A DNA stretch of 64,000 nt from positions 62,001-126,000 of IMG/VR virus record IMGVR_UViG_3300032242_002454. One strand, written 5' to 3'. The notes beneath the pieces are model-generated. The model was not told where the DNA came from. It made no database searches and saw only the letters and a program-made list of their open reading frames with translations. Positions 18,377 to 55,828 of this stretch are shown here, one piece after another. The position numbers and the translations under genes were made by a program. Each line of letters begins with the position of its first letter. The stretch's first letter is position 1.

Positions 18377-18756
18377 AAATCTGCTCCGAGTGCTGTCACA
18401 TGAGTAGTTTGTGCAACACTGGTTGTGACTCTCACAGACCAAGAAGCACTAGGAAGAATTAAGTTTGTATATAATGTACTAACTCTAGACTGTTGGACTG
18501 TTGAGCTACCTGTAGCAGCAGCAACGGTGACTTCATCAAATAACCAGTATGTTGATCCATCATAAAGAAATATTCTAACAATAGCAGCAGCGGATGTTGC
18601 TGCATTTTTAACTACTATTTCATTGATTTTTGTTCCTGTTGAAGCTCCAGTTATTAAAGTGCCCACGTTTGTAGGTGCTGTATAACTAGAATCAGCAGTA
18701 GCAATTGAAACTGCTGCAACTCTTGGTGTAACTGCGAAAACTGGACTAGCTGCCAT
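18373..18756 (-). CDS. Small fibre-associated structural protein
   Basis: 127 aa, beta-rich, translationally coupled between fibre genes. Confidence 0.6.
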   Translation of the reverse strand: MAASPVFAVTPRVAAVSIATADSSYTAPTNVGTLITGASTGTKINEIVVKNAATSAAAIVRIFLYDGSTYWLFDEVTVAAATGSSTVQQSRVSTLYTNLILPSASWSVRVTTSVAQTTHVTALGADL

Positions 18757-18765
18757 GATAAACTC

Positions 18766-20457
18766 CTATCTGAAAGATGACCATAAGTAAAGATTTGCAC
18801 TATTAGTAACATTAGTAGGTATACTACTACTACCAGTAGCATTAAGAGTGTATGTTCCAGAAGTGGCGGATATGGTCACACCTGATCCTGCTACTATATT
18901 TAGTACTGGTAATAATCCACTAACACTACTATTAAAATCAGTTATATTAGATGAAGTATGAGTATGGCTAGCAGCAGCATAATCGGTACCAGCAATAGCA
19001 ATGCTTGGAGCTCCTGTGCTAGTTGTATTCTTAATAAGACCAGTACTAAGCCCTGCTAATAAAACACCATTAATTTTTGTTACTGTCGCATTTAATGAAC
19101 TAGAGCTTCCAGATGCTGTAACATCACCACTGATGCTAATTGTTTGATCGCCAGTGTTGGTTCCACTACTAGTCCCACTAAAAGTTCCATTTTGTGTTGC
19201 CAAAGTACCCAAACCTAAAGAAGTTCTCTGAGCAGCAGCATCGGCTCCAGTTAATAATGCTCTTCCAGCAGTTGTACTATCGCTAATTTGACTAGAGGTG
19301 TGGGTATGTCCTACAAGACTAACTCCTGTACTATTTACCTGTAAACTTTGAGTAAAATTACCGCTTGGAGAAGATATCGAACCAGTGAATGTTGCACCAG
19401 TCAGGGCTGCTCTGGTTGTATCTGTTGGGTGTATATGATCTGCCCTGGCGTACCTAGTAGAAGTTCCTATTGTGGCAGTTCCGTCTATCAAAGGAGTAGA
19501 TGATGAAGCTTGTCCCAAAACAAATGCTGTACTAGCAATTTGAGTAGTATTAGTGTCTACTGCTGCTGTTGGAGAAAGAGGAGTTCCTGTTAAAGTTGGG
19601 CTATTTAATAAAGCATAATTACTAACTAATCCGCTAACCGAAGAATTAAAATCGGTAATATTTGATGAAGTATGAGTATGAGAAAGAGCAGCTTTATTAT
19701 CAAGAGCTGTTTGAGTAGCACTACTTATTGGTTTACTAGTATCACTAGTATTATCTACATTCCCCAGACCGACCATACTTTTAGTAATACCATTGACAGT
19801 TCCAGTAAAAGTAGGACTAGCAAGTGGTGCATATACCCCATTAACTAATCCACTTACAGAAGTATTGAAATCTGTAATCTGTGAAGATGTATGAGTATGA
19901 GAGCTAGCAGCATAGCTTCCAGAAGCTTGTTTACCATCCAAAGCACTTTGTAACCCAGTAACATCTCCAATTATATGATTATGTCCACTAACACTAACAT
20001 TAACACTATTCACCTTTAAAGAACTAGAGAATGATCCACTTGGTGCAGTTAGTGTTGCTCCATCAAATGTTAGATTAGTTTGGGCGTTAATTCCTGTAGA
20101 AGTATTGTCTGATAATAATACTCTATTAGATCCATAATTTGATACTGATGTAGATGAGCCTCCAGTAGCAGTAGAATTGATAGTATATGTTCCACTAGTT
20201 GAACTTATGGTTACATTACTTCCGGCCACAATATTCTTTACCGGGAAAAGCCCACTTACTGAACTATTAAAATCACTAATATTTGAGACAGTATGATTAT
20301 GGTTGGATAGGCTATTCCAAGCAGTAACTCCATCTCCTATTTTAAGAATTAGATTAGTTAAGTCATAACCCGGTTCTCCGCTAGCCAATACTGGGTTAGC
20401 CGAATTCCACTGAGAGGCTGTGCCTTTACGCAAAATTATTAGATTATTTACAGCCAT
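18766..20457 (-). CDS. Tail fibre protein with Mtd_N-like N-terminal anchor
   Basis: ILRKGTASQWNSANPVLASGEPGYD...KIGDG; repeated HTHTSSxITDFNxSVSGL. Confidence 0.75.
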   Translation of the reverse strand: MAVNNLIILRKGTASQWNSANPVLASGEPGYDLTNLILKIGDGVTAWNSLSNHNHTVSNISDFNSSVSGLFPVKNIVAGSNVTISSTSGTYTINSTATGGSSTSVSNYGSNRVLLSDNTSTGINAQTNLTFDGATLTAPSGSFSSSLKVNSVNVSVSGHNHIIGDVTGLQSALDGKQASGSYAASSHTHTSSQITDFNTSVSGLVNGVYAPLASPTFTGTVNGITKSMVGLGNVDNTSDTSKPISSATQTALDNKAALSHTHTSSNITDFNSSVSGLVSNYALLNSPTLTGTPLSPTAAVDTNTTQIASTAFVLGQASSSTPLIDGTATIGTSTRYARADHIHPTDTTRAALTGATFTGSISSPSGNFTQSLQVNSTGVSLVGHTHTSSQISDSTTAGRALLTGADAAAQRTSLGLGTLATQNGTFSGTSSGTNTGDQTISISGDVTASGSSSSLNATVTKINGVLLAGLSTGLIKNTTSTGAPSIAIAGTDYAAASHTHTSSNITDFNSSVSGLLPVLNIVAGSGVTISATSGTYTLNATGSSSIPTNVTNSANLYLWSSFR

Positions 20458-20538
20458 CTTGAAATATAGTCCTATTATAGAGTAGTATATAGGTTATCTT
20501 AATTATTAATACACCCGCTAGCCAGATAAGTAATGGTC

Positions 20539-21406
20539 TTATAATTGGCTATTTTTACCAAGCATTCTTTTTTTGGCTCTATTTAATATATTGTCCAAGC
20601 TCTCTTCTGATATTCTGGTCTTAAAATAATTATAAGCATCAACCACCATATAGTGATTAGGATCTTGACTAATTTCTAACCACCCCACAAAGTAGTTCCA
20701 GATCCTATCTTCTAATATTAAAGGATATTTAATTCCATTGGGACGATTAAATCTATGAAGCCACTTGAGTTGAGGAATACATATTGCTTTCCCCCCATTT
20801 CGTCTAAATTTTTCATGAATATAACCCTCTTCTGCACCAAAGCCTTTAAAGTAAGGATTAAATCCTGGCCAATTTTTAGTCTCACAGGAAAATAAGCCCA
20901 ATCCCATCATTTGTATTTCAAAAGGCAAACCAGACTCATAACCTTCTCTATTGGTATGCCAAGTTCCATACATATCTCCACGCCATTCTGGAACAAACTC
21001 TGTAGAATAGCTTTCTAAGTCGTCATGTACTAATGGTCCTTGAATTATATCTTTGCAATTTTCATTTTGATTATAATATTCTAATAGTTTTTCTAATCCT
21101 CCACTAGCTATCAATACGTGACAATCCATTGAAATGGTGTATTTGCCACTAGCATTAGAGAATATTTCGTTTCTAACTGCTGTGCTGGTTCGATCTTTAT
21201 ATGGAATATATTTGCCTCTACCTTTAGTCCACCCAGTTAATAGATCTTTGACAGCTTGTCCGTGAGGACCGTCTGGATTATTATCAATTACTATTAGTTC
21301 ATAATCAATAGATTGAAGGACTGGTTGATACATTCTTAATGCTTGGAGACTAAAATATACTCCATCATAATCATCATATGTTGCCATGCCTATGGTAAGA
21401 AGTTTA

Positions 21407-21417
<11 letters not shown>
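20539..21417 (-). CDS. Glycosyltransferase (GT-A fold, family 2-like)
   Basis: LTIGMATYDD, ELIVIDNNP, YTISMDCH and GFGAEEGYIHEKFR motifs. Confidence 0.8.
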
Positions 21418-22387
<970 letters not shown>

Positions 22388-22399
22388 TATAAAACTTAA

Positions 22400-23866
22400 T
22401 TAGGTAAAATATAGAACAATTCCACCAGGACCTCCTGTTCCATTGCCGTTGCCAAAACCAAAACCATAACTCCAAGTTCCTTTATATGCGCTTAAAGAAT
22501 ATCCAGCACAGGGAGTAAAGCCATCAAAAACACCTGATGGAATATACTGATTAAGTCCTAAAAATCCAGTACTATTATAGTCTCCTCCAGATCCTGAGCC
22601 ATCAGTACCATTATATATGTAGTTTGCCTGTCCGGCCAATGAGCTGGCTGGTGATCCTCCTCCAGCTGATATTGTTGCTCCATTATAAGTTATAGAAGAA
22701 CTTCCCCCAGCAGTAGGAGCTGGTCCACCATAATATCCTCCTAATCCAGAAGTGCCAATAGTATAAGATACAGAATTACCATATGATACAGAGTATGTCT
22801 TGATTGATCCTCCACCATCTCCTCCGTCTCCGCCTAATTCACAACTATTTTGGGTATTGTATCCTCCACCTCCTCCTCCATAAACAATTGCTATCATACT
22901 AGATGCTCCATTAGGAACACTATAACTACCAGCTCCTGGACTAGCAGAACAAAATCTTGTGGGAGTAAAAGATGGTGGGGCTGTAGTTGTGGTAGTAGTT
23001 GTTGAACCGCTAATAGCAATATCTATAGCTCCCTCTAATCCAGAAGGGTCAGAAAGTACTGGTAAAATACCAGAGTATGTAGCATCCCAATCTCCAATAT
23101 TAGCATTATCTCCTTCTCCATTTTCTCCAAGATTTTGTAAATTATCAAAAATATTACTGTTTTGAGTAAAGTTTTCTGTTGCAATTGTTAAGAAACTGGC
23201 CTCATTTTCTGATAATATTAATTCTTCTGATACTGCTTGAATACTAATACCAGTTTCAAAACTACTTCTAGTTAAACCATAAGGAGCTAATGCTTTTCCA
23301 AAACCATCCCATAATGCTCCGTCTCCACCATTCCATAAAGTTCCGTTGCTACTAGCTACTCTTTTAAGTATAGGAACTATAGCGCCACCAAGTTTAACTA
23401 CGTTATTAATATCAGACCAGCTAATTTCAAAATTAAGATAAGCATTATTTCCAGATCCAATTTTTAAGATTTTTATATTCACTGGCCCAGAAGTAAATTT
23501 AATTGTATCATTATATGTTGTAGAAGTGCCGTTATAAATCACTCTAACATTACTAACAACTTTAGCAGTGCCGTAGGCTTTATTTGTATAAAGAACTTTT
23601 ATAGTATTTGTTGAAGTTTGTAAATCTAATAGGATAAGTTCATTATTTCCTGCGGTTCCTGGTTTATTATCTCCCCATTGTGCTATAGTTTTAGTAATTA
23701 CTCTATTTTTAGAATCTAAAGAACTAGTAGTAATATACATATGAGGATCTCCCCACCCTCCTACCGTCATTGACGACAAGGTTGATAGCGGAGGAGATAT
23801 CGGTTGCGGGGGCTTTGTCTTGGGTCGCCCATTAACTATAAAAAATTTACCGTTTTTCATTAACAA
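22400..23866 (-). CDS. Fibre/adhesin-like protein with Thr linker and Gly-rich C-terminal domain
   Basis: WGDPHM motif; C-terminal domain similar to that of 16265-18376 (both end GGIVLYFT). Confidence 0.65.
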   Translation of the reverse strand: MLMKNGKFFIVNGRPKTKPPQPISPPLSTLSSMTVGGWGDPHMYITTSSLDSKNRVITKTIAQWGDNKPGTAGNNELILLDLQTSTNTIKVLYTNKAYGTAKVVSNVRVIYNGTSTTYNDTIKFTSGPVNIKILKIGSGNNAYLNFEISWSDINNVVKLGGAIVPILKRVASSNGTLWNGGDGALWDGFGKALAPYGLTRSSFETGISIQAVSEELILSENEASFLTIATENFTQNSNIFDNLQNLGENGEGDNANIGDWDATYSGILPVLSDPSGLEGAIDIAISGSTTTTTTTAPPSFTPTRFCSASPGAGSYSVPNGASSMIAIVYGGGGGGYNTQNSCELGGDGGDGGGSIKTYSVSYGNSVSYTIGTSGLGGYYGGPAPTAGGSSSITYNGATISAGGGSPASSLAGQANYIYNGTDGSGSGGDYNSTGFLGLNQYIPSGVFDGFTPCAGYSLSAYKGTWSYGFGFGNGNGTGGPGGIVLYFT

Positions 23867-23872
23867 CCTTAA

Positions 23873-24589
23873 TTATGGGGTTCCACCATCTATAGTAAAG
23901 TATTTTAATGTTGTTGTTGGCGTTGTATTTAATGAACCAAATAACTCATTACTTGATGCATTAAATTTGAGATTATTATTGACACTTGGTTTAAGATTGC
24001 CATCTGTGCCATTAACAAATACAAGACTATTTACATTACTTGTACTAAGATCTACTTCAATATTATTAGCATTGGTAGCAGTACCAGTCAAGTTACCAAC
24101 AAACGATGTGCTACTAACACTACTTAGTCCTGATATCGAGGTAATACTTCCACCAAGACTAACTGGTGTTAAACCAATAGTAACAGAACTATTAACTAAT
24201 TTAGAATTATCAATACCACTAGTATTTAAAGAAATAGTATAATTGCCACTATTCTGGCTAAGAGAGATACCACTTCCTGCTGTTAAAACACTACTAATAG
24301 TAAGAGTATTTGTTCCACTACTATATACGATATCGACTCCGCTACCACCAACAATACTTGCACTAACAGCATTATCAATAAGAGCATTAACACCACTAGC
24401 AAAATTAGTAATATTTGAAGTTAATAGATTAATACTACTTAAACTTGACCAAGTCGTAGATCCATCACCTATCTTTAAACTTTTATTTGTAATATCATAT
24501 CCTGGCTCTCCACTAGCTAATACTGGATTAGCAGAAGTCCACTCTGTTGATGTTCCTTTTCTAATCTGTATATTAGTAATTCTACTCAT
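23873..24589 (-). CDS. Fibre protein with Mtd_N-like anchor
   Basis: IQIRKGTSTEWTSANPVLASGEPGYD...KIGDG; ends IDGGTP. Confidence 0.7.
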   Translation of the reverse strand: MSRITNIQIRKGTSTEWTSANPVLASGEPGYDITNKSLKIGDGSTTWSSLSSINLLTSNITNFASGVNALIDNAVSASIVGGSGVDIVYSSGTNTLTISSVLTAGSGISLSQNSGNYTISLNTSGIDNSKLVNSSVTIGLTPVSLGGSITSISGLSSVSSTSFVGNLTGTATNANNIEVDLSTSNVNSLVFVNGTDGNLKPSVNNNLKFNASSNELFGSLNTTPTTTLKYFTIDGGTP

Positions 24590-24608
24590 TAAATAATCCT
24601 AAATAAAA

Positions 24609-26174
24609 TCAGGGAGTTCCACCGTCAATTGATGATATGGTAATATTTGCTGTACCATCAAAACTAGTCCCGTTGATGGTACGAGCAGTCTGGAGTGCTG
24701 TTGCACTACTAGCATTACCTGTTAATGCCCCATTAAAAGATGTACTAGTCACAGAAGATAATCCAGCTAGTGTAGTAGCCGATGAACCTAAAGAAATAGA
24801 TGTTGATCCAACAGTAACTGAACTATTAGCTAGTTGAGCATTATCTACACCAGCAGTTTTAATTGTTACATTGCCGCTAGTAACTAGAAAATCACCAACA
24901 TCAAAAGTCGCAATACCTTTAGTAGATGATGTAGCATCAACAACGCTTATTGATCCACTAACTACTCCTGTTACTCGTCCATAAGCATCCACCGAAACAC
25001 TTTGAATAACAGAAGAACCAGAACCGCTAGAATTACTTTGGGAAACTGTTGCAAGATCAATACTGTCTGCATTAACTACAATTCTGCTTGAACTAGCTGT
25101 ACCAATATCTATAGTATTGCCAGTTTTGGTAAGACCAGAACCAGCAGTAATTTGGCCAGCGCCACTAAATTGAGAAAATGTTAAAGATGTTGTTCCTAAA
25201 ACAATAGAATCATTAGTTGTTAGTACCCATCCAGAATCTGAGTTGGTTGTTCCTTCAGCAACAAAGGTAAACATACCAGCGGTAATTTTAGAACTAGCAT
25301 CTGCATCAGTATCTCGTGACCATGTACTAGCTGCTACGACATAAATACCATTAAAACTCGCTATTGTTTGATCTTTAACCAAAACTCTATCTCCAATAGA
25401 TAATGCAACACCATCTATGGTTTGGGTGCCACTTAAAGTGATATTAGCAGTTGTAGCTGCTCTAACACTTTGTTTAACGTCCAATCCTTGCTTTAGAGCA
25501 TCTACATATGCTTTTGTAGCAGCATCGGTGTCGCTTGTTGGGGTAGCAAGATTAGTAATTTTTTGACTATTTAAAGAAACAGAAGAGGTTGGAGCAGCTA
25601 GTTGATCGAGTGTGTTGGTTCTTACTGCTGTATTAAAATCCGTAATATTAGATGCTGTATGAGTATGTCCAGGCAAACTAACTCCAGTAACAGCAACTGA
25701 TAAAGAATTACCAGAGTCATTATATGTTAATTGAATATTTGATCCCGCGGATAATAAAGCTGCCACTCTATCATCAACTGCTTCACTAAAGTCTGTAACC
25801 AAGGTAGAATCAATAGTAGGATTACTAACGCTAATAGTATAAGTACCACTGCTATAACCTAAAACAATACCACTACCAGCACTTAAAGGACTTGACAATG
25901 TAAGAGTATTAGCAGCGTCATTATATAACTTAACAATACCAGTACCAGCAACTACTAGAGCATCTACCCTATCATCAATACTCTCATTTAATTCTGAAGG
26001 AAGAACAGCAGCATAGGGTAAGGATGACCATATTGTTGATCCATCACCCACCTTGAATTTTCCTGTATCAGTTTCATAACCAATTTCTCCGGCATATAGA
26101 ACTTGGCTGGTCCATTGATAAGACCCCACTCCTGCAGTACCTCTTCTGAGTTGTATTCTAGTTAGTGCTGGCAT
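24609..26174 (-). CDS. Tail fibre protein with Mtd_N-like anchor
   Basis: IQLRRGTA...GEIGYETDTGKFKVGDG; KITNLATPTSDTDAATKAYVD; QTIDGVALSIGDRVLVKDQT; ends IDGGTP. Confidence 0.75.
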   Translation of the reverse strand: MPALTRIQLRRGTAGVGSYQWTSQVLYAGEIGYETDTGKFKVGDGSTIWSSLPYAAVLPSELNESIDDRVDALVVAGTGIVKLYNDAANTLTLSSPLSAGSGIVLGYSSGTYTISVSNPTIDSTLVTDFSEAVDDRVAALLSAGSNIQLTYNDSGNSLSVAVTGVSLPGHTHTASNITDFNTAVRTNTLDQLAAPTSSVSLNSQKITNLATPTSDTDAATKAYVDALKQGLDVKQSVRAATTANITLSGTQTIDGVALSIGDRVLVKDQTIASFNGIYVVAASTWSRDTDADASSKITAGMFTFVAEGTTNSDSGWVLTTNDSIVLGTTSLTFSQFSGAGQITAGSGLTKTGNTIDIGTASSSRIVVNADSIDLATVSQSNSSGSGSSVIQSVSVDAYGRVTGVVSGSISVVDATSSTKGIATFDVGDFLVTSGNVTIKTAGVDNAQLANSSVTVGSTSISLGSSATTLAGLSSVTSTSFNGALTGNASSATALQTARTINGTSFDGTANITISSIDGGTP

Positions 26175-26197
26175 GTTTATAGACCTTAATTTAAAAG

Positions 26198-26470
26198 TTA
26201 TGGAGTACCACAGTCAAAAGTATAATGGTTTAAATAATCGTTAAGTCCAGAAATTCTATACACTGATAAATCACCAATAATTTTATTCATAGGATATGTA
26301 TCTGGTAAGTCACTTGGTAGTATCTTTTCAGTATTAATAATATCTACATTATAAATTTCATATCTTTCAATATCAATATTATTTATATTGTCTATATAGC
26401 TAGTTTCAATTTCAATAATACTAGTATCTGTATCTGTAATTTCAACTATAAAATCACTCATATTTGACAA
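26198..26470 (-). CDS. Hypothetical acidic structural protein
   Basis: Coupled to 26458-26865; ends FDCGTP. Confidence 0.55.
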   Translation of the reverse strand: MSNMSDFIVEITDTDTSIIEIETSYIDNINNIDIERYEIYNVDIINTEKILPSDLPDTYPMNKIIGDLSVYRISGLNDYLNHYTFDCGTP

Positions 26471-26865
26471 TCCAATATGTTAGATGATTGACTAAATCGT
26501 TTAACAACAGTAATTGTTCCAAAAAGAATACGAGTTAAATATTTACCTCCTCCATTAGCATATAATTCATCAGGAGATTGTAGTTCTACATCATATTTAG
26601 CCGTATTAAAATTAAATCCATTGGTGGTGGTGGCTGGTATCAGTATAGTTAATTTACCATTTGGTTCATCTATTGTAAATTTATATAGACTATAATCGGT
26701 ATTATGTGAGCTAAAGGTCTGTATTGTACTAAGATTAGTTTTCCATATTAATCTAGCACACCATCCAGTAAGATTGATAGGATTACCATTAGAATCTTTA
26801 TAGATAAAAGATATCCTAAAAGAGGTTCCTTGTTCTATAGCAAAGTCGTATTTACCTGCTGCCAT
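26458..26865 (-). CDS. Small virion structural protein, paralogue of 13087-13527
   Basis: Sequence similarity as noted for 13087-13527; first gene after the capsid terminator. Confidence 0.6.
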   Translation of the reverse strand: MAAGKYDFAIEQGTSFRISFIYKDSNGNPINLTGWCARLIWKTNLSTIQTFSSHNTDYSLYKFTIDEPNGKLTILIPATTTNGFNFNTAKYDVELQSPDELYANGGGKYLTRILFGTITVVKRFSQSSNILDCQI

Positions 26866-26951
26866 GTTTTAGGCCCTTAAGATTTATGGTTGGCCAACTA
26901 TAATTAAGTCTGGAATACCTATCATATAGATACACCTTAACACTAAGATAT

Positions 26952-26991
26952 AAAAAAAGAAGGGCCAGTAACTTTAATTACTGGACCCTTC
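26952..26991 (-). terminator. Intrinsic terminator after the major capsid gene
   Basis: Minus strand GAAGGGTCCAGTAA-ttaaag-TTACTGGCCCTTC followed by T7. Confidence 0.85.
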
Positions 26992-27019
26992 AGATTTTAA
27001 TGTAATCTAATTAATTAGA

Positions 27020-28030
27020 TCAGACAGCGCCTAGGATAACTCTGCGGTTGTCTAGAACAGCAAAGCCTTGCTCGGCCCAGCCGTAGAAGCCAGCTCTCTT
27101 TTGACGATGTAGTGTATCGTCTTCAAAGACCTGTACTTGCTCACGAACTGGCATTATGAAACTGTCTCTCTTGCGTAGATCGAGACCAACAACAATTTCA
27201 TTCTTGCCACTTGGTAGACTACCACTAAGAGTACTGCTATAGAATAGCTGGTATTCTTGGCCTTCGCCTAGTTCGTCAAGATCATGAAGATTAATACTGA
27301 AAACACGGTTTAGTGTGCCATCAGCAGCTGTGTAGATCTCTCTACGAGTCACTTCGTCAACTTGATCGATACCCCAACTGCGGATATCTTCCATTGACTC
27401 TGGTGAAACATAAAGATCAGTTAGCAAGCCACGATTGTTAGAAGCACTGTTACCACCGCCGTTGCGACGCATAACTGTCTTCATTAGACTTACTAGACGC
27501 TTTGTGAAAAGACCACTTGAGGCATCGCTGTCATAAACAACGATGTTGCGGTCAACACCAGCGGCTAGCAATGTGTGCCAACCATCGTCATTCATCTTCT
27601 TGACGAATGAACCTTCTAGTACTTCCATTGCACGACCAACAACGTCCCAACGAGCATCACGAGCATACTTTAGGAGGTAGTCGATTGAAGCGCCAATGTC
27701 ATAGGTTGGAACCATGACGTAATCGCCTTCAACGTGACGCTCTGGAATATAGCCGTGGTTAGGAACAGTGTAGGCCACAAAGTCTTTTTCCGTGCCAGGA
27801 GCAAGGAAATCGAGTGGAAATTCTGGAGTGGCACTTTGAGCAAGTTGAATTGGCTCGAAAATACCATCAAGAATATCACCACTCAAGAGACCTTGTCTTA
27901 GTGGTAACTCTAGAGCCTTTGCAAACTCTGAGTTAGCAGCTAAGGCTACTTCTCTATTTGGTGAACCGGAACGAACGAGAAGATCTGTTAGTTCTGGTGT
28001 TGGTTTAAATGCTTTTGTGTTAACTGACAT
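27020..28030 (-). CDS. Major capsid protein (HK97 fold inferred)
   Basis: 336 aa; follows portal, protease/scaffold and decoration genes; has its own strong terminator. Confidence 0.75.
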   Translation of the reverse strand: MSVNTKAFKPTPELTDLLVRSGSPNREVALAANSEFAKALELPLRQGLLSGDILDGIFEPIQLAQSATPEFPLDFLAPGTEKDFVAYTVPNHGYIPERHVEGDYVMVPTYDIGASIDYLLKYARDARWDVVGRAMEVLEGSFVKKMNDDGWHTLLAAGVDRNIVVYDSDASSGLFTKRLVSLMKTVMRRNGGGNSASNNRGLLTDLYVSPESMEDIRSWGIDQVDEVTRREIYTAADGTLNRVFSINLHDLDELGEGQEYQLFYSSTLSGSLPSGKNEIVVGLDLRKRDSFIMPVREQVQVFEDDTLHRQKRAGFYGWAEQGFAVLDNRRVILGAV

Positions 28031-28051
28031 TTTTTTCTCCCTTGTTAAAGC

Positions 28052-28507
28052 TTAAGCAATGTTAACTGATAATTTGACATAACCATCAGAATCTTTTGAC
28101 CCCAAGAAGGTGCCAATTTTCACACTATTAGTACTTGATGTGCCAATGAGGCCACTAGCACCAACATAGGCATCGACACCAGCAGCAGGAGTAATAGCAG
28201 CAACTAACATATTAGTTGTTACTTGACCCTGACGAAGTAGGGAGACCTTGCCACCCAATTGTACTTCATCTTTGTGCCAGTTGATGTGCTGTCTTGTTAG
28301 ATCAAGATTCACAACGTCATTGAGTAGGATACCGAGAGGCTTTGAACCACTTACTGTGGCAGCATAAGCAGCAACAGCATTAGCGTCATCCATAGCAACG
28401 CCGGAACCACTTGTTACAGCAGAAGCTACGCCGCCTCTTTCACTAACTGCGTTAGAGAAAAAAGAAATATCTGTTAAGAGTTCGATACGATCTGGTTTAA
28501 GAGCCAT
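28052..28507 (-). CDS. Capsid decoration/cement protein
   Basis: 151 aa, small-residue rich, between scaffold and MCP. Confidence 0.6.
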   Translation of the reverse strand: MALKPDRIELLTDISFFSNAVSERGGVASAVTSGSGVAMDDANAVAAYAATVSGSKPLGILLNDVVNLDLTRQHINWHKDEVQLGGKVSLLRQGQVTTNMLVAAITPAAGVDAYVGASGLIGTSSTNSVKIGTFLGSKDSDGYVKLSVNIA

Positions 28508-28508
28508 G

Positions 28509-30152
28509 TTATTCTCCCTTGTTAAGTTTTTTACCTAGTCTAGCACAAACAAATTCAATTAATTCAGCACGAGTGGTGTCAACTGGTGATGTTTCACTAC
28601 TAACACTGAGATTTACAGTCTCTTCAACTTCAACTGTGTCAAGAGCAGATGCATCTACTGTATCTTCGGAAGCTTTCTTCTTTTCCTTGGTATCAGTATC
28701 TTCATCTTCTTTTTTGTCTTTTGAAGTTTTATCATCTTTTTTAATCTTTTCCAACCATGGTGGCATTTTGCCAGCAAATAAACTAGTCATGGCTTCAAAA
28801 GCATCATCATTAAGATTATCAAATTTTTCAACTGTAGCTTCTGCTGATTCAGCATCAAAACCACAATCTAGTAGAGAGGCCTTTCTTTTCATCTTCTTTT
28901 CTTTCTTAGCCATCTCTTCTTCTTTCATCTTATAGCCAGCAATAACTTCGTTGGCTGCTTCTAAAGCTGCCTTAAGATTCTTATTCTCTTCATCTTTAGC
29001 GTCTTCGTCTTCTTTGACTTTGAGCTTCTTGGCTGCTTCTGTCTCTTCGTCTTCTTCTTCTTTTGCTTTCATCTTCTTAGCCATAGCTTCATTCATAGCC
29101 TTGAGGGCTTCGACTTCAGCTGTAAGAGAAGCAATTAGCTCATCTGTTGCACTAGATGTTTCAGGTTCTGTTGTTGTATTTTCTGTTGAAGCTTCTACTG
29201 TGGCCTTTGGAGCAGATTCTGTGGCCTTTGGAGCAGATTCTGTGGCCTTTGGAGCAGATTCTGTGGCGACAACAGCTTCTGTTGCTGTTTCGACCTTTTC
29301 GATTGTTTCTGCTACTTTATTGTCTGAACTCATAATATTATTCTCCACTTTAGAGGTTAACTGATTGTTAGATACACCTGCTATTGATAAATCGTTACTT
29401 TTTTTAGTAAACAAGTCATCAATTATATTTTTATTAAAAATAATACTTTCTGGATTAGCTGGTTTTTCAACATATCCTTTACCAGAAAATGTAATATTTC
29501 TTAATACTCTACCTATCTTATAATTGTCATGTTCTCCTAATCCACCATAAGCTCTTAAGTATTTTGTTAAATATGCAGTGTTTTCATTACGAGCTAAAGT
29601 TTTATATGTTCCAGTAGACTTATCTAGTAGACCATAATCAAAACCCTTAAAGAAACACTCCATGCTAACAAACATATCACCAGACTCTATTTCTGCAATA
29701 AGCTTATCAGATCTTTCTTTTAATTCTGGACTAGTAAAAGCTCTATAAATTACTGATCCAGTTAAAATATGGTACTTTTCTGGAAGGTTCTCAATAGGAG
29801 TATCTTCAGAAATAAGAATACCGTCTTCAGTGATTGGCCAATTGCTAGTAATATGGCCAATAATTAAATTCTCATCATGTTCTAGGTTTGTTGGTTTATC
29901 TTCTGGAGTATTTCTGGCCATCCATATTTCATCTTTATCAAAAATATCGTCATTTTTATTCCATGAAGAAGTAACTAGAATAGATTGAACATAATATAAA
30001 TCAGAATCTTCAACGGATGCTAAACTCTTAAATTTTCTGATTTGAGACTTGTTTGGGTGGCATGGCTCTGCTACGGAAGCATAAGAAATTGATGCAGATG
30101 AGGATATTTTAGCCTCTAAACCATCTTCGCGTTCTGCTGTAAATATTTGCAT
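28509..30152 (-). CDS. Prohead protease-scaffold fusion
   Basis: N-terminal NLEHD...IGH, VSMEC and GYVEKPANPES protease-like motifs; charged coiled-coil C-terminal half. Confidence 0.7.
   Translation of the reverse strand: MQIFTAEREDGLEAKISSSASISYASVAEPCHPNKSQIRKFKSLASVEDSDLYYVQSILVTSSWNKNDDIFDKDEIWMARNTPEDKPTNLEHDENLIIGHITSNWPITEDGILISEDTPIENLPEKYHILTGSVIYRAFTSPELKERSDKLIAEIESGDMFVSMECFFKGFDYGLLDKSTGTYKTLARNENTAYLTKYLRAYGGLGEHDNYKIGRVLRNITFSGKGYVEKPANPESIIFNKNIIDDLFTKKSNDLSIAGVSNNQLTSKVENNIMSSDNKVAETIEKVETATEAVVATESAPKATESAPKATESAPKATVEASTENTTTEPETSSATDELIASLTAEVEALKAMNEAMAKKMKAKEEEDEETEAAKKLKVKEDEDAKDEENKNLKAALEAANEVIAGYKMKEEEMAKKEKKMKRKASLLDCGFDAESAEATVEKFDNLNDDAFEAMTSLFAGKMPPWLEKIKKDDKTSKDKKEDEDTDTKEKKKASEDTVDASALDTVEVEETVNLSVSSETSPVDTTRAELIEFVCARLGKKLNKGE
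29198..29267. repeat. 21-bp tandem repeat, 3.3 copies (ATESAPK)
   Basis: CTGTGGCCTTTGGAGCAGATT x3 plus a partial copy. Confidence 0.9.
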
Positions 30153-30155
30153 TAT

Positions 30156-32360
30156 TTATACCTCTTTTTCTATAGAAGAATACACCATAGAATAAAACGA
30201 AGCTTTGGCCTGTTTGTGTTCATCAACAGATAGATCTTTATTGAGATCAGCTTTCAGTTCTTTAAGCCATACACTATAGGCTAATATTGTTTCATTTTTG
30301 TCAAATTGACTAAGATTACCTAGTATGTCGATAATTTTATCTGAAGCTATAGTTGATAGTGGATCTAAAGTAAATAGAATTTTAGTCTTGATTAGATCTA
30401 CTTCTTTTGTTTCGTCGCTAGATAAACTTCTGAGATTTTTTTTGTTATAGAACTCTAGCATTATAGGGTTAATAATTTGACTAATCTTATCTTGAGCTTC
30501 TGATGCCCATAGTAAAAGTTTGGCGCCGGTTTGTGGTTTAAAAACTTTTGTTTTACGTTTTTCAGTATCTTTGGAAGTTTTAGGTCTGCCTTGTCCGGGC
30601 AATCCTGGCAAAGATTCAGGAGAATCTTTTGCCAACTTCGTTGAGGGTGCAGTGGCAGGGGGTTGCTTCATTTCCAATGCAGTTTTCTCACCACTCTTCT
30701 TCTTCTCAAGCTCAAGTCCAACTTGACTAGGAGCTACTGAACCACCCTGTAACGCAATTTTCTTAAGAGCATTCTCAACTTGTGGATCAAACCAAGGACC
30801 AGCTTTTTTAACCATTCTACTACTATTTCTATCTCTAGCCTCTTTATTAAGTCTACTTTTTTCCATATCAGGATCAAGACCAAATCTAGTTTGTATAAGT
30901 TCATCAGAAACTAAGTTTCTATCTGCTAGCTGAACTAATAAAGATTTCTCAGTGTCTTCATTACTAAGATCCATTCTATCAAATTCTATTTTAGCTGGAT
31001 ATCTAAATCCCATGGCTTTTTGTACCAATGCAATTTCTTGTTCCCAAAAATCTATTAACACATCTCTGCCATATTGGAGTCTTTGCGTTAAGGTCTTTAA
31101 TGAAATAAAGTTATTAGTAGTTCCCGCTGCTCCAAAGGTTCCGGTAAGAGTTGGAGGAATACCAAGACCAGCATAAACACTATTCATATGAGGAATGTAT
31201 TTGCCTTCACCTAAGAATTGATGAACTGCTGTCTTAGATTCTAATAGTTCAATATCTGGACCCCAAACAAGATCCATTGTTCCACCACCAACATTATTAC
31301 CTAAGATTTGTGCTAGTTTAGCTGTTGCTGCTTTAGTAGGAGCAATCTTATGTTCTAGACTACCTAGTTTGAAAATACGAATATTAGAGATAGCACCATC
31401 AAGAGCAGCAAGGTCTGCTAGCTTTAATTTTTCAATAACATTGATATCATCCATAATAGCATATACCATAGGAAATGCCCATGATTGCCAATCGTCTTTC
31501 TTATAGTGAAATACAAGTGTCTTATTGGTATCTAGTGGATAAGGTAGTCTACTTTTTGCTGCTGCTATAATTTGAGGAGGAAGTCCTGCAACAACTTGTT
31601 TCTCTGCATCTGTCTTTGGATTATTAATTAATTTTCTTAACTCTGGTGGCAACTGTAGTTCATAAGCTTTACTCGATGTAAATGAGGATAATGCTCCAGC
31701 TGCAATATCTACTAAAAAAGGATCAATAAAAGTATATACCCAAGGAATTTCTCTTTTCTCTAGTTGTACTTCAGACAAATCCTGTACTTGCAAATCTGGA
31801 GAAGCTATTGAGTTATATAGTTTATCTGCAACCTTAAGACTTAGTTTGCCAGTTTGTCTATTAATAACAACATTACCGCTCTTATATAGGTTGTTTAAAA
31901 ATCTTTCGCTACGATCCTTGCCTCGAATCTTTTTGAACCATTGTCTATAGAATCTTTCTATTCTTTTGTTTTTATGAACTAGTCTGATACCTTGACTAGC
32001 AAAGTCACCCATAAGATCAATAACATTTTTTACTAAACCAACTCTTTGATAAATATCTTCTGCTCGTCTGATAATCATTTTGATTTCACGAGGTACTGCT
32101 TCGTCTGGACGAAAGTAATCGTAATCAGATCTTGTTAATCCTGGTCGACCAGAAGTATTTTTATCTAAATTAGAATAGTCTAATCCATAACGTCTCATAC
32201 CACTAGCTTTTTGAACTAGGGTATATTCTGACATAGATTCAGAAGACTGCTTAAGAGCTTCTTGTTTACTGGCTAAATCGTCTCCCCAAGCAACATAAGC
32301 CTGTTCGCCAGTAACTTGAGCATCATTGATAGCATCACTTTTTGGATATTTTTTAGCCAT
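30156..32360 (-). CDS. Portal protein
   Basis: 734 aa directly after the terminase; helical, with LGIPPTL and IEFDRMDL portal-like segments. Confidence 0.75.
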   Translation of the reverse strand: MAKKYPKSDAINDAQVTGEQAYVAWGDDLASKQEALKQSSESMSEYTLVQKASGMRRYGLDYSNLDKNTSGRPGLTRSDYDYFRPDEAVPREIKMIIRRAEDIYQRVGLVKNVIDLMGDFASQGIRLVHKNKRIERFYRQWFKKIRGKDRSERFLNNLYKSGNVVINRQTGKLSLKVADKLYNSIASPDLQVQDLSEVQLEKREIPWVYTFIDPFLVDIAAGALSSFTSSKAYELQLPPELRKLINNPKTDAEKQVVAGLPPQIIAAAKSRLPYPLDTNKTLVFHYKKDDWQSWAFPMVYAIMDDINVIEKLKLADLAALDGAISNIRIFKLGSLEHKIAPTKAATAKLAQILGNNVGGGTMDLVWGPDIELLESKTAVHQFLGEGKYIPHMNSVYAGLGIPPTLTGTFGAAGTTNNFISLKTLTQRLQYGRDVLIDFWEQEIALVQKAMGFRYPAKIEFDRMDLSNEDTEKSLLVQLADRNLVSDELIQTRFGLDPDMEKSRLNKEARDRNSSRMVKKAGPWFDPQVENALKKIALQGGSVAPSQVGLELEKKKSGEKTALEMKQPPATAPSTKLAKDSPESLPGLPGQGRPKTSKDTEKRKTKVFKPQTGAKLLLWASEAQDKISQIINPIMLEFYNKKNLRSLSSDETKEVDLIKTKILFTLDPLSTIASDKIIDILGNLSQFDKNETILAYSVWLKELKADLNKDLSVDEHKQAKASFYSMVYSSIEKEV

Positions 32361-49525: not shown

Positions 49526-50031
49526 AACAAGTAGAACTCCATGCCGAAGTGCGATTTCATCTGCTAAACGGGCCTAATTATAAAAAATGGCAAGTAAATA
49601 TTATGCAAGGTAAGAAAAGGGTTGACCAATTTTATGTAGACCCTACAGAATACCAGTTAGAGATGCGTGGTTGCAAACTGGTAAATAAGGTAGCTAGGGC
49701 AAAATGGGTCAATAAGAAACAAAAAAAGAATGTTAGTGGTTGGGTACAGTGCGAGGAGGTTATGCTTCGCAAGGATTTTTATCCCTCTTTGCCTATTGAC
49801 AATCTTGAAAAGTTGTATTACAATCCGATAAAAGATATCCATTGGCGACGAGAGAGTGATTGTGGTGAACATGTGTGGGATGATAGTGAGTATGACACCT
49901 TAGTTACCGATGGGCGACAGGTACATATTCTGGAAGAACGTGACGGAAATTTTGACGGCATTTACGAGATAGACCCTAAGTATACAGAAAGTTTTGGAAT
50001 TTATGATCAAGATCGAACTGAGCGTCCGTGA
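49522..50031 (+). CDS. Hypothetical protein
   Basis: GAGGA RBS; ATGA-coupled. Confidence 0.7.
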   Translation: MKQVELHAEVRFHLLNGPNYKKWQVNIMQGKKRVDQFYVDPTEYQLEMRGCKLVNKVARAKWVNKKQKKNVSGWVQCEEVMLRKDFYPSLPIDNLEKLYYNPIKDIHWRRESDCGEHVWDDSEYDTLVTDGRQVHILEERDGNFDGIYEIDPKYTESFGIYDQDRTERP

Positions 50032-50377
50032 GTCGTTGAACATGATTGCAAACGGTTGCAGTCTGGATATGTTCGACAAGATTGTGTGTGCGTTGGAGGT
50101 GGCGTTGGGTGTGAACCAGCGTCGTACCGTGACCATCACGGGTGGTATGACTCTCGACAATCGCATCCATTGCATCAAGGCAATTCGACTCCACACCGGA
50201 TGGGGTTTGAAGGAAGCCAAGGATTGGAGTGACTATCTGGTTGGTGGCTGGAAGTACGACAAGTGGTATCCAGCACCGGCAGGCGTTAAGCACAGCATGA
50301 CTCTGAAAACGCCCGAAGCGGCAGAGGCACTGCTGCGTGAATTGACTACCTTGGGTTGCGAGGGTTTTCTCTCTTGA
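50003..50377 (+). CDS. Ribosomal protein bL12 (L7/L12) C-terminal-domain-like protein
   Basis: NRIHCIKAIRLHTGWGLKEAKDWSD matches the bL12 CTD pattern K(I/V)xVIKxVRxxTGLGLKEAK. Confidence 0.7.
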   Translation: MIKIELSVRESLNMIANGCSLDMFDKIVCALEVALGVNQRRTVTITGGMTLDNRIHCIKAIRLHTGWGLKEAKDWSDYLVGGWKYDKWYPAPAGVKHSMTLKTPEAAEALLRELTTLGCEGFLS

Positions 50378-50981: not shown

Positions 50982-51054
50982 GCCCCTGTAGCTCAGTAGA
51001 TAGAGCGGCGAGCTTCTACCTCGCGGGTCGGGAGTGCAACTCTCTCCAGGGGTA
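50982..51054 (+). tRNA. tRNA-Arg(TCT)
   Basis: Acceptor GCCCCTG/CAGGGGT; anticodon arm GCGAG-CTTCTAC-CTCGC; T-loop TGCAACT. Confidence 0.9.
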
Positions 51055-51540
51055 CTATATATGTGTCCATTGTTTATTAGAAACGATTCTTTTGATATGC
51101 TGATAAGAAACATTATATATTCTTCCTAAGTCAGCTAATGTATATTTATCAGTACTATATAGTATTCTAATCTCTTTAATATTCTCTTCTGAGAGTTTTG
51201 CTCTGCCATGATCGATGCCTAGTCTAGGTTTTGTTTTGTGAGATTTAGCAGTATTTGATGATCTTTCTAACCATTGTAGATTATCTATATGGTTATTAGA
51301 CATATCTCCATCAATATGGTCTATGGTGGGATGGATCATATCATTAGGTTTAGGCTCGCCCCAAACGTCCATAACTAATTGATAGATTTTTCTTCTATAT
51401 CCATTGCCAGTGTTAATAGTTAGGTAACCATCTTTGTCTTTAAATCCGATAAACTTTTGATACCTAAGACCAAAAATACGGCCATCTTTATAAACTAGAT
51501 AATTAGTATAAATTGGGTGTGTTTTTGCTTCGTTGTTCAT
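51055..51540 (-). CDS. HNH homing endonuclease with C-terminal DNA-binding domain
   Basis: TIDHIDGDMSNNHIDNLQWL; HGRAKLSE...TLADLGRIYNVS. GGAGG RBS before ATG 51540 (track start 51552). The only real minus-strand gene seen in the early region. Confidence 0.85.
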   Translation of the reverse strand: MNNEAKTHPIYTNYLVYKDGRIFGLRYQKFIGFKDKDGYLTINTGNGYRRKIYQLVMDVWGEPKPNDMIHPTIDHIDGDMSNNHIDNLQWLERSSNTAKSHKTKPRLGIDHGRAKLSEENIKEIRILYSTDKYTLADLGRIYNVSYQHIKRIVSNKQWTHI

Positions 51541-51568
51541 AATTTCCTCCATACCTTATAATACACCA

Positions 51569-54142: not shown

Positions 54143-54215
54143 GCCAGTGTAGCTCAGTCAGCAGAGCGTCAAATTTGTAATTTGAATGTCGCGGGTGCAA
54201 CTCCTGCCACTGGCT
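54143..54215 (+). tRNA. tRNA-Thr(TGT)
   Basis: GCCAGTG/CACTGGC; TCAAA-TTTGTAA-TTTGA; T-loop TGCAACT. Confidence 0.9.
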
Positions 54216-54281
54216 TTATGAGTCGAAAGAAAAAACGTATGTAAACGCTCTATCTGGTGTATATATTCGTATCCAGAGGAG

Positions 54282-54809
54282 ATGTCTATGATTGTAAAAT
54301 GTAGTTGCTGTAATAAAGAGTTTAATAAGCAGAAGTACGAGGTAATTAAGTCAAAAAATAATTACTGCTCACGTTCCTGTGCAGCAAAAATAAACAATAG
54401 GCTATTTAAAAAGAGAAGAAAAAAAGTTAGGCATTGTACGAACTGTAAGATTGAAATTATTGGCAAGGGAAAACTTTATTGTAGTATTAAATGTCAAAAT
54501 GTTTTTCAGTCAGAAATAAAGATAAAGTCATGGCAGCTAGGAATGGACGATGGATACGAAACTAATGGAACAGTAAGGAGGTATATAAAAAAATTCTTAC
54601 TGGAAAAAAGAGGTCAGAAATGTGAGGAGTGCGGTTGGAATAAAATCAATCCAAATACCAATAAGTGTCCATTGGAAATACATCATAGGGATGGAAATTA
54701 TAAAAATAATATAGAAGAGAACTTACAAATACTATGTCCGAATTGCCATTCATTGACAGATACATATAAGAATATGAACAAAGGTAATGGTAGAGAATGT
54801 AGAAGATGA
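54282..54809 (+). CDS. HNH endonuclease with N-terminal zinc-finger repeats
   Basis: CSCC...YCSRSC, CTNC...YCSIKC, CEECG...LEIHHRDGNYKNNIEENLQILCPNCH. Confidence 0.85.
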   Translation: MSMIVKCSCCNKEFNKQKYEVIKSKNNYCSRSCAAKINNRLFKKRRKKVRHCTNCKIEIIGKGKLYCSIKCQNVFQSEIKIKSWQLGMDDGYETNGTVRRYIKKFLLEKRGQKCEECGWNKINPNTNKCPLEIHHRDGNYKNNIEENLQILCPNCHSLTDTYKNMNKGNGRECRR

Positions 54810-54880
54810 TCCGGGATGGTGAAATGGTATCACAGCAGACTTTGGATCTGCGTTTCTACGTTCAAGTCGTAGTCCCGGAA
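54810..54880 (+). tRNA. tRNA-Gln(TTG)
   Basis: TCCGGGA/TCCCGGA; GCAGA-CTTTGGA-TCTGC. Confidence 0.9.
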
Positions 54881-54884
54881 TTAT

Positions 54885-54956
54885 TGGCGAGTAGCACAAC
54901 GGTTGTGCAAGCGGCTGTTAACCGCTAGGTTACAGGTTCGAATCCTGTCTCGCCAG
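54885..54956 (+). tRNA. tRNA-Asn(GTT)
   Basis: TGGCGAG/CTCGCCA; AGCGG-CTGTTAA-CCGCT. Confidence 0.9.
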
Positions 54957-54961
54957 CTTGA

Positions 54962-55048
54962 GGAAGAATGGCAGAGCGGTCTAATGCATCTGATTACTAA
55001 TCAGAAGAAGTGTAAAAACTTCCGTGGGTTCGAATCCTACTTCTTCCG
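54962..55048 (+). tRNA. tRNA-Ser with unusual ACT anticodon
   Basis: GGAAGAA/TTCTTCC; TCTGA-TTACTAA-TCAGA; long variable arm; canonical TTCGAAT T-loop. Confidence 0.85.
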
Positions 55049-55078
55049 TTCGGAGGCTGATGTTTGAGTTACGAAAAC

Positions 55079-55149
55079 ATTGGAGTAGTTCAACGGTAGA
55101 ATGACGGTCTCCAAAACCGTAGATGAGGGTTCGATTCCCTCCTCCTTTG
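55079..55149 (+). tRNA. tRNA-Trp(CCA), imperfect acceptor stem
   Basis: ACGGT-CTCCAAA-ACCGT; T-arm GAGGG-TTCGATT-CCCTC; acceptor ATTGGAG/CTCCTTT has two U-U mismatches. Confidence 0.65.
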
Positions 55150-55152
55150 CTT

Positions 55153-55224
55153 GGCCCCATAGTATAGTAGTTAGTACGCTGGCCTTTCACGCCGGAGACC
55201 TGGGAGCGTAACCCAGTGGGGTCA
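55153..55224 (+). tRNA. tRNA-Glu(TTC)
   Basis: GGCCCCA/TGGGGTC; CTGGC-CTTTCAC-GCCGG; atypical T-loop AGCGTAA. Confidence 0.85.
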
Positions 55225-55235
55225 TTTGTTTCTGC

Positions 55236-55275
55236 TAATCCTGCGGATTTGGAAGCTGTGGGAATAGTCAGCGAG
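55236..55275 (+). repeat. 40-bp family B repeat
   Basis: taatcctgcggatttggaagctgtgggaatagtcagcgag. Confidence 0.75.
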
Positions 55276-55346
55276 AATCCTAAAGTTTTGGGTGTTGACA
55301 GACCGATATTGGTATGGTAGACTGTTGGAACAAGAAAGGAAACTGT

Positions 55347-55520
55347 ATGAAGAATCTTCGTATCTACGACATTGTGACCGAGGATGGTAAAACTCTGGCA
55401 GATATTCAACTATCCATGCAAGAGGATTTTGAATGGTCGGATGTTTTTGATAAGCTCTATGATTTTACAACCGAGAGCGTCCAAAGTTATTCTTACGAGG
55501 AAATTACCGTAACCGAATAA
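55347..55520 (+). CDS. Small acidic hypothetical protein
   Basis: Promoter 55295; AAGGA RBS. Confidence 0.65.
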   Translation: MKNLRIYDIVTEDGKTLADIQLSMQEDFEWSDVFDKLYDFTTESVQSYSYEEITVTE

Positions 55521-55526
55521 TAAGGC

Positions 55527-55599
55527 GGGGCTTTAGCTCAGTTGGTAGAGCAAGGGTCTTTTAAACCTTTGGTCGTGGGTTCAAGTCCCACAGGCCCCA
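55527..55599 (+). tRNA. tRNA-Lys(TTT)
   Basis: GGGGCTT/AGGCCCC; AGGGT-CTTTTAA-ACCTT; TTCAAGT T-loop. Confidence 0.9.
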
Positions 55600-55651
55600 C
55601 TTGACAGTTGTTGATTGTTGGTGTAGAATAGAGGTAAGAAAGGGAGTAATT

Positions 55652-55828
55652 ATGAGATATGAAGATCACTATGATGGCTACAATTATGACTACGATGAAT
55701 TGGTAGAAAATACCGAGGATCTTGGTCTAGACGAAGAACCTTGGATGGATGGGTATGAGGAAGAAGATGACGAGGTTCCTTCATATGGTAAGAATTACTA
55801 TCCTAGTATTGAGGATGATCAGGACTGA
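55652..55828 (+). CDS. Highly acidic Tyr-rich small protein
   Basis: 23 D/E and 9 Y in 58 aa; promoter 55601, GGAG RBS. Confidence 0.7.
   Translation: MRYEDHYDGYNYDYDELVENTEDLGLDEEPWMDGYEEEDDEVPSYGKNYYPSIEDDQD

Follow-up and report, generated by a model that had tools for sequence, protein, structure and literature searches.

Results

A tRNA-Ser with anticodon ACU in a freshwater jumbo phage

The window analysed here is a stretch of 64,000 nucleotides, bases 62001-126000 of a 204,625-bp (204.6 kb) IMG/VR virus record (IMGVR_UViG_3300032242_002454) that has direct terminal repeats and a GC content of 34.5%. Genes for a large terminase and for head and tail proteins are present in the genome, together with several giant ORFs. 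Its TerL shares only ~24% identity with any cultured phage, and the runs that hold its sequence are freshwater or lake metagenomes from 16 studies; the source is a freshwater jumbo phage without a cultured relative. ARAGORN predicts eight tRNAs in the window and ten genome-wide (Arg-TCT, Thr-TGT, Gln-TTG, Asn-GTT, Ser-ACT, Trp-CCA, Glu-TTC, Lys-TTT, Ile-TAT and Leu-TAA), with Ser-ACT as the sole serine tRNA of the phage. The features that matter for this analysis are as follows.

54962..55048, + strand: tRNA-Ser(ACU), class II, 87 nt, no encoded CCA (ARAGORN, Rfam RF00005, cloverleaf reading, covariation)
54996..54998, + strand: anticodon ACT, with A34 at 54996, U33 at 54995 and A37 at 54999 (sequence)
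54143..55600, + strand: cluster of seven tRNAs, Thr(TGT), Gln(TTG), Asn(GTT), Ser(ACT), Trp(CCA), Glu(TTC) and Lys(TTT) (ARAGORN)
50982..51055, + strand: tRNA-Arg(TCT), the reader of the remaining AGN-box codons, AGA/AGG (ARAGORN)

The gene at 54962-55048 (+) is called by ARAGORN as tRNA-Ser with anticodon (act), and the same interval matches Rfam RF00005 with 57.3 bits (E 1.1e-10, gathering score 29) over the full model, positions 1-71, the variable arm appearing as a 16-nt insertion. Reading the sequence as a cloverleaf gives a 7-bp acceptor stem (GGAAGAA/TTCTTCC), a 3-bp D stem (GCA/TGC), an anticodon stem TCTGA/TCAGA closing the 7-nt loop TT-ACT-AA, a 5-bp variable-arm stem (GAAGT/ACTTC), the T stem GTGGG/CCTAC and a discriminator G. 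The original prediction had described a clean class II tRNA-Ser with the loop UU-ACU-AA; ARAGORN, Rfam and our own reading agree, and the gene is confirmed as a clean class II tRNA with A34.

The anticodon ACU is complementary to the serine codon AGU and lies outside the standard serine anticodons (NGA or GCU). Given that SerRS does not read the anticodon, this is no argument against serine identity. The SerRS identity set of E. coli consists of G73, G1-C72, G2-C71, A3-U70 and C11-G24. All five elements are present in tRNA-Ser(ACU) and appear unchanged in an alignment of 31 homologues, in which G1, G2, A3 and C11 were set by the search pattern, so that their invariance there is no independent evidence. 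We also considered whether an offset reading of the loop would give a CUA amber suppressor. This was rejected, as the loop has seven nucleotides with U33 before ACU and A37 after it, and the genome reads well in the standard code, with 81% of it under ORFs of ≥100 aa.

The other nine tRNAs of the phage read AGA, ACA, CAA, AAY, UGG, GAA, AAA, AUA and UUA and, tRNA-Trp aside, the set is a supplement for A/U-ending codons that the phage uses heavily. It includes the tRNA-Arg(UCU) already ascribed to this phage, which ARAGORN recovers. The order of the cluster in the window recurs in related viral contigs, for example L005, L016, L028, L030 and L167 (ARAGORN). Among the genes adjacent to the cluster none has a tRNA-related function: they encode a DUF932 protein, an HNH endonuclease, a weak PRTase match and proteins of no assigned function.

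A34 is authentic and conserved

We looked for the two things that would speak against the anticodon call, a read error and relatives that all carry GCT. The relatives carry ACT, and a contig from the probable source run is identical to the window over 54672-55728. A contig from an independent freshwater (lake) run covers 54961-55166 with 2 differences, and among the read-mapping matches listed none differs at 54996.

Pattern searches of viral contigs extended this result. A pattern with N at position 34 matched 21 viral contigs, 19 of which hold a near-identical tRNA with A34. When the pattern was confined to the T arm and 3' acceptor and the anticodon left free, the 29 NCT hits comprised 27 ACT and 2 GCT copies, and this 27:2 ratio is the unbiased evidence for A34. 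Three types of anticodon stem occur among the ACT copies found in this way, TCTGA/TCAGA, CCGGT/ACCGG and GCATT/AGTGC, and in every one the changes are compensated in full. A search in which the acceptor was set to GGAAGAN found the loop TTACTAA in exactly 50 viral contigs, and a pattern built from a D-arm motif and the T loop placed Ser(ACT), in near-identical or diverged copies, in at least 118 other IMG/VR viral contigs. The pooled scans contain at least 106 distinct Ser(ACT) sequences with at least 33 acceptor stems, each retaining at least 6 of 7 acceptor pairs.

In an alignment of 31 distinct A34 tRNAs, 98.5% of the cells are paired and 14 of 25 pairs have changes on both sides; 0 of 500 shuffles were as high, and no slid register comes near the observed pairing. 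Covariation extends to every pair of the anticodon stem and of the variable arm, five in each. That the loop, acceptor and T loop do not vary in this alignment follows from the search patterns. On a tRNA tree of 129 sequences built with position 34 masked, the identity of that position requires 11 changes, as against ~31 for shuffled labels. Counting independent origins of A34 from this tree was abandoned, since ~88 nt is too short and the resolution is weak.

Sequencing or assembly error can be rejected: the source contig is identical and A34 is found in many independent assemblies. That dozens of these carry A34 is the strongest evidence that it is not an error. Ser(ACU) is a large, conserved phage tRNA family.

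A34 stands in for G34 in phages

We were interested in how A34 relates to the common G34 form of this tRNA. In a scan that accepted A or G at position 34, A34 was present in 21 of 80 cases among the matches listed, and all 74 loci new to that scan had G34; among the matches listed, roughly one in four phage tRNA-Ser(NCU) genes that fit the pattern thus has A34. ARAGORN analysis of 339 fetched viral loci yielded 2,806 tRNAs. Ser-act and Ser-gct occurred together in one locus in only 3 of 152 cases, and five complete relatives (175-238 kb, CheckV 100%) carry ACT without GCT. In phages, A34 stands in for G34 rather than beside it.

Other two-fold boxes in the 339 loci are nearly devoid of A34: it is absent from Asn (0 of 149), Asp (0 of 104) and Ile-AAT (0 of 140) and rare in Tyr (2 of 85), His (3 of 83), Phe (1 of 52) and Cys (1 of 70). 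This near-absence indicates that A34 is peculiar to the Ser AGY box rather than a product of general mutational drift. As a separate observation, four-fold boxes in these loci do contain A34, with 22 Thr(AGT) versus 18 Thr(GGT) and 12 Leu(AAG) versus 15 Leu(GAG); these are the two anticodons also kept by a few Firmicutes and Mollicutes.

Judged by tRNA order, at least two phage lineages carry Ser(ACT), one with the arrangement of the window, Thr-Gln-Asn-Ser(ACT)-Glu-Lys, and one with Ser(ACT)-Gly-Thr...Trp-Cys. Six A34 queries gave no match above ~83% identity in 50,697 cultured-phage records. The cultured-phage matches whose anticodon was read, a minority and not an exhaustive census, had GCT or TGA and no ACT.

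A34 tRNA-Ser in cellular genomes

A census of GtRNAdb found non-ACG A34 tRNAs to be rare in cells; those of split boxes turned up sporadically and in every case together with their G34 counterpart (bioRxiv 10.64898/2026.05.15.725136). We scanned one genome per species, 185,579 prokaryote species in all (GTDB), with the GGAAGAN-acceptor pattern and obtained 41 G34 and 4 A34 matches. The two surveys bear out the view, taken in the original prediction, that A34 outside tRNA-Arg(ACG) is rare in cells.

Two of the four A34 matches, L167 (a Ca. Planktophila MAG contig of 17.7 kb) and L159 (a Pirellulales MAG contig of 11.5 kb), carry phage-type tRNA arrays. Because these arrays match viral contigs in order, both are probably misbinned phage DNA, and the Ca. 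Planktophila and Pirellulales bins could be weak hints at hosts. The other two look chromosomal: L156:1455-1542 (Patescibacteria) and L173:926-1013 (a 'bacterium', 184-kb contig). In both, tRNA-Ser(ACT) adjoins recQ and transporter genes, with a tRNA-Ser(GCT) 3-4 kb away, and the genomes behind them measure about 0.8 and 1.0 Mb, respectively. The presence of a GCU copy beside the cellular Ser(ACT) in L156 and L173 fits a supplementary role.

Among 301 sampled genomes of the GTDB class of L156, four (that of L156 included) have a class II tRNA with the loop TTACTAA, one of them on a contig of >442 kb. L214-L216 belong to this class and carry such a tRNA; the genomes of the carriers, L156 and L173 included, span 0.6-1.0 Mb.

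Codon usage of carrier phages

Codons were counted in 167 ORFs of ≥100 aa (55,424 codons). AGT (1373) is 3.2 times as frequent as AGC (424) and makes up 30% of the serine codons of the phage, with AGA and AGG present 1234 and 191 times. In the serine-rich minus-strand structural block, AGT reaches 30.7 per mil, compared with 19.7 elsewhere. A match to AGU-rich late genes, one of the roles proposed for this tRNA at the outset, fits these figures. The bias extends to other amino acids: AGA accounts for 61% of Arg, CAA for 75% of Gln, GAA for 78% of Glu, AAA for 71% of Lys and TTA for 41% of Leu codons. TCT (1551) and TCA (907) are also common serine codons, and the phage has no tRNA for either.

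Across the viral loci, AGT represents 31% of serine codons in A34 loci versus 17% in G34 loci (Mann-Whitney p = 7e-13, uncorrected for relatedness). The ratio AGT/(AGT+AGC), calculated for A34 and G34 phage loci that are not phylogenetically independent, is 0.66 versus 0.60 and does not differ significantly (p = 0.17). The two groups of loci differ in overall AGT/AGY use only. The A34 loci showed no avoidance of AGA or AGG, which is compatible with a tRNA free of misreading at Arg codons. We also asked whether tRNA-Arg(UCU) could be a dedicated partner that protects AGA; this was not supported, Arg-tct being present in 35% of Ser-act loci and 41% of Ser-gct loci.

Modification state and decoding capacity

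The only gene with a deaminase fold in the phage encodes a dCMP deaminase (phrog_174, E 5.5e-32, with a ComEB match too), and no TadA-like gene was found in the phage genome. A phage-encoded tRNA deaminase was accordingly dismissed, its sole candidate matching dCMP deaminase/ComEB and not TadA. The loop of a TadA substrate, U33-A34-C35-G36-A37-A38, is not reproduced here, where it reads U32-U33-A34-C35-U36-A37-A38. In one metatranscriptome run (contigs), the tRNA-Trp and tRNA-Lys regions were covered and tRNA-Ser(ACU) was uncovered.

Published measurements with the same anticodon point to narrow decoding. An orthogonal tRNA with the ACU anticodon reads AGU at 9.4% and AGG at 0.36% in E. coli, whereas its reading of AGC and AGA falls below detection (PMC11066159). 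These values contradict, for ACU, the earlier suggestion that an unmodified A34 could wobble broadly. In the same study inosine was detected in 3 of 15 A34 anticodons in E. coli, ACU being without detectable inosine; ACG and AUG were named as the highly modified pair and AAG was also discussed, and on other substrates TadA was blocked by loop changes at 32, 37 or 38 (PMC11066159). When a native-backbone Ser-tRNA(ACU) was overexpressed, E. coli grew better in at least two media; mistranslation by Ser-tRNA(ACU) was ranked as unlikely, and Phe-tRNA(AAA) became I34 in E. coli (bioRxiv 10.64898/2026.05.15.725136). All these data come from E. coli and may not transfer to the host of the phage.

Discussion

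A proposed supplementary tRNA that would read AGU

The reading we favour, and consider moderately probable, is that Ser(ACU) is a functional supplementary phage tRNA whose A34 is unmodified and which reads AGU and essentially nothing else. Host SerRS would recognise it for charging by its long variable arm, by G73 and by pairs of the acceptor and D stems; A34 would stay unmodified, and AGU would be read through a Watson-Crick A:U pair. AGC and the remaining serine decoding would be left to the host tRNA-Ser(GCU) and UCN tRNAs, the phage adding a putative specialist for AGU, a codon that it uses most heavily in its serine-rich structural genes. We infer that Ser(ACU) is charged with serine, keeps A34 unmodified, decodes AGU alone and confers a fitness benefit.

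Such a division of labour would explain why phages often have A34 and cells seldom do. A cell must cover AGU and AGC with one tRNA and would keep G34 for this reason, whereas a phage tRNA is an add-on and could afford to specialise. A tRNA specialised for AGU would also account for the near-exclusion of ACT and GCT in phages and for the co-presence of GCT in the Patescibacteria copies, for the heavy AGU use of the carriers, and for the confinement of A34 to a single split box, the one in which laboratory data show it to be both specific and harmless.

Several other explanations were weighed against this one. Host TadA, or another deaminase, might convert A34 to inosine, in which case Ser(ICU) would read AGU and AGC with some risk at AGA. 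Bacterial tRNA-Arg(ACG) always has its A34 deaminated, and the loop of Ser(ACU) has U33, A34, C35, A37 and A38 in common with that TadA substrate. E. coli also edits Phe-AAA (bioRxiv 10.64898/2026.05.15.725136), His-AUG and Leu-AAG (PMC11066159). However, position 36 is U rather than G and position 32 is U, the ACU tRNA of E. coli has no detectable inosine and does not read AGC (PMC11066159), and the phage, with its dCMP deaminase, has no TadA-like gene. I34 would moreover read AGA, the codon for most of the arginines of this phage, and the A34 phages do not avoid it. Deamination to inosine, which the original prediction had raised, is unlikely on this evidence. The same prediction had offered A34 as an escape from an anticodon nuclease that targets tRNA-Ser(GCU); more broadly, the escape might be from any host defence against that tRNA, with AGY decoding preserved during infection. 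The substitution of A34 for G34, without addition to it, and its specificity to the Ser AGY box would suit such an escape, although we know of no nuclease that targets tRNA-Ser(GCU). Phage tRNAs with altered anticodon loops have indeed been proposed to evade anticodon nucleases, but Ser(gct) is explicitly listed as not targeted (PMC10264068), and a tRNA with A34 could not make good a loss of AGC decoding (PMC11066159). Outside the anticodon the loop has the usual form, UU-NNN-AA, and searches of the phage genome for RNA ligase and RtcB repair genes found none, the PF09511 profile being uninformative as its control matched nowhere. We found no support for nuclease evasion and regard it as quite improbable.

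It could also be argued that A34 arose by a G-to-A change that is neutral or mildly deleterious, or that it marks a pseudogene or an assembly error. ACT and GCT are separated by a single transition, AT-rich genomes are biased towards G-to-A, and genomic tRNA_ANN alleles have little effect on fitness in E. coli (bioRxiv 10.64898/2026.05.15.725136). Set against this are the recurrence of A34 in at least 118 independent contigs and at least 106 distinct sequences, with stems kept by compensatory changes, the identity of the source contig, and the near-total lack of A34 in tRNAs for the other two-fold boxes of these loci. A neutral or non-functional A34 is very improbable, and is largely refuted by the conservation data. 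We give roughly an even chance to the proposition that Ser(ACU), with a truly unmodified A34, is a widespread specialist decoder, mainly of phages, and would be the first natural split-box A34 family shown to be under long-term purifying selection.

Comparison with known A34 and phage tRNAs

The closest cultured-phage matches, at ~75% identity, are tRNA-Ser(GCU) genes, for instance those of Synechococcus phages S-PM2, S-SKS1 and S-CREM1, which are also class II with a 3-bp D stem, a long variable arm and G73, share the loop UU-NCU-AA and likewise sit inside a phage tRNA cluster. They differ in having G34, which reads AGC and AGU, where Ser(ACU) has A34. The near-universal bacterial A34 tRNA, tRNA-Arg(ACG), the partner of TadA, resembles Ser(ACU) in its gene-encoded A34 and in U33, C35, A37 and A38. 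Unlike that tRNA, Ser(ACU) has U36 for G36 and serves a split two-fold box rather than a four-fold one, and inosine in its anticodon would misread Arg AGA. Mollicutes Thr(AGU) and Lactobacillales Leu(AAG), natural A34 tRNAs that are unmodified or lineage-specific, are parallels in another respect, with A34 replacing G34 in AT-rich genomes and being retained over long periods (bioRxiv 10.64898/2026.05.15.725136); those tRNAs serve four-fold boxes, in which broad reading is harmless, whereas the box of Ser(ACU) is split with Arg.

Two engineered tRNAs share the anticodon: the M. jannaschii orthogonal tRNA(ACU), a construct that is AGU-specific and without detectable inosine in E. coli (PMC11066159), and the native-backbone Ser-tRNA(ACU) of E. 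coli. Both are laboratory constructs, whereas Ser(ACU) occurs naturally, as a family that phages conserve and that has a backbone of its own. That phage tRNAs match phage codon usage is well known, and Ser(ACU) resembles such codon-compensation tRNAs in sitting in a cluster that matches heavily used A/U-ending codons. The usual phage sets have ordinary cellular anticodons; the anticodon of Ser(ACU) is almost never encoded by cells.

What is new is a conserved, widespread split-box A34 tRNA that is concentrated in phages. Subscription journals and supplementary tables aside, we found no published description of Ser(ACU) or A34 tRNAs in phages. The near-absence of unmodified A34 from life was described as a 'sharpened paradox' in a 2026 preprint, and the Ser(ACU) family speaks to why this is so; nature, it would seem, has already run the experiment. 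The family offers a natural system for studying whether A34 can stay unmodified in a split box, how specifically an A:U pair is read in vivo, and whether the reading of U- and C-ending codons by one gene is what bars A34 from cells. In practical terms, annotation pipelines should not flag Ser(ACT) in phages as an error, and Ser(ACU) backbones are candidate AGU-specific tRNAs for codon reassignment.

Further observations on the phage and its relatives

At 51055-51552 (-) of the window, an ORF whose product has an HNH endonuclease domain (PF13392, E 5.7e-7) adjoins tRNA-Arg(TCT), an arrangement that fits a spread of tRNA genes between phages driven by homing endonucleases. tRNA-Trp(CCA), at 55079-55150 (+) of the window, has two non-canonical acceptor pairs, 2-3/70-71, in the Rfam alignment, and in read mapping its conserved core attracts contigs from many other organisms. 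Upstream, a 127-aa ORF at 49994-50377 (+) of the window has a weak match to the C-terminal domain of ribosomal protein L7/L12 (E 2e-5), its score of 25.3 bits falling just below the 25.9-bit cut-off. The giant ORFs of the minus-strand structural block encode 4023, 5022, 2674 and 1868 aa and lie, all on the (-) strand, at 1019-13090 of the window and at G000:C1:37321-52389, 17642-25666 and 25675-31281 of the record.

The genome of the window phage contains no tmRNA. tmRNA genes were seen at L003:6628-6976, L007:4967-5315, L012:3539-3887, L017:2911-3259, L018:4159-4507, L013:4139-4489 and L093:1312-1686. In five viral contigs the tmRNA lies ~35 nt from tRNA-Ser(ACT) and has the tag GETRFALAA; those of L013 and L093 lie 1.3-4 kb from tRNA-Ser(ACT) and have other tags, GTNSYAMAA and ANNNYAPEMALAA. 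The short tags that begin with GE presumably resemble those of Bacteroidota, a possible hint at the host.

The phage also encodes a tRNA-Ile(TAT), outside the window at G000:C1:141752-141825, which is found in many relatives as well, L028, L030 and L038 among them. A reader of AUA with U34 is uncommon in bacteria, where the usual one is a lysidine-modified CAU. The 339 viral loci contain 57 Ile-tat versus 83 Ile-gat genes.
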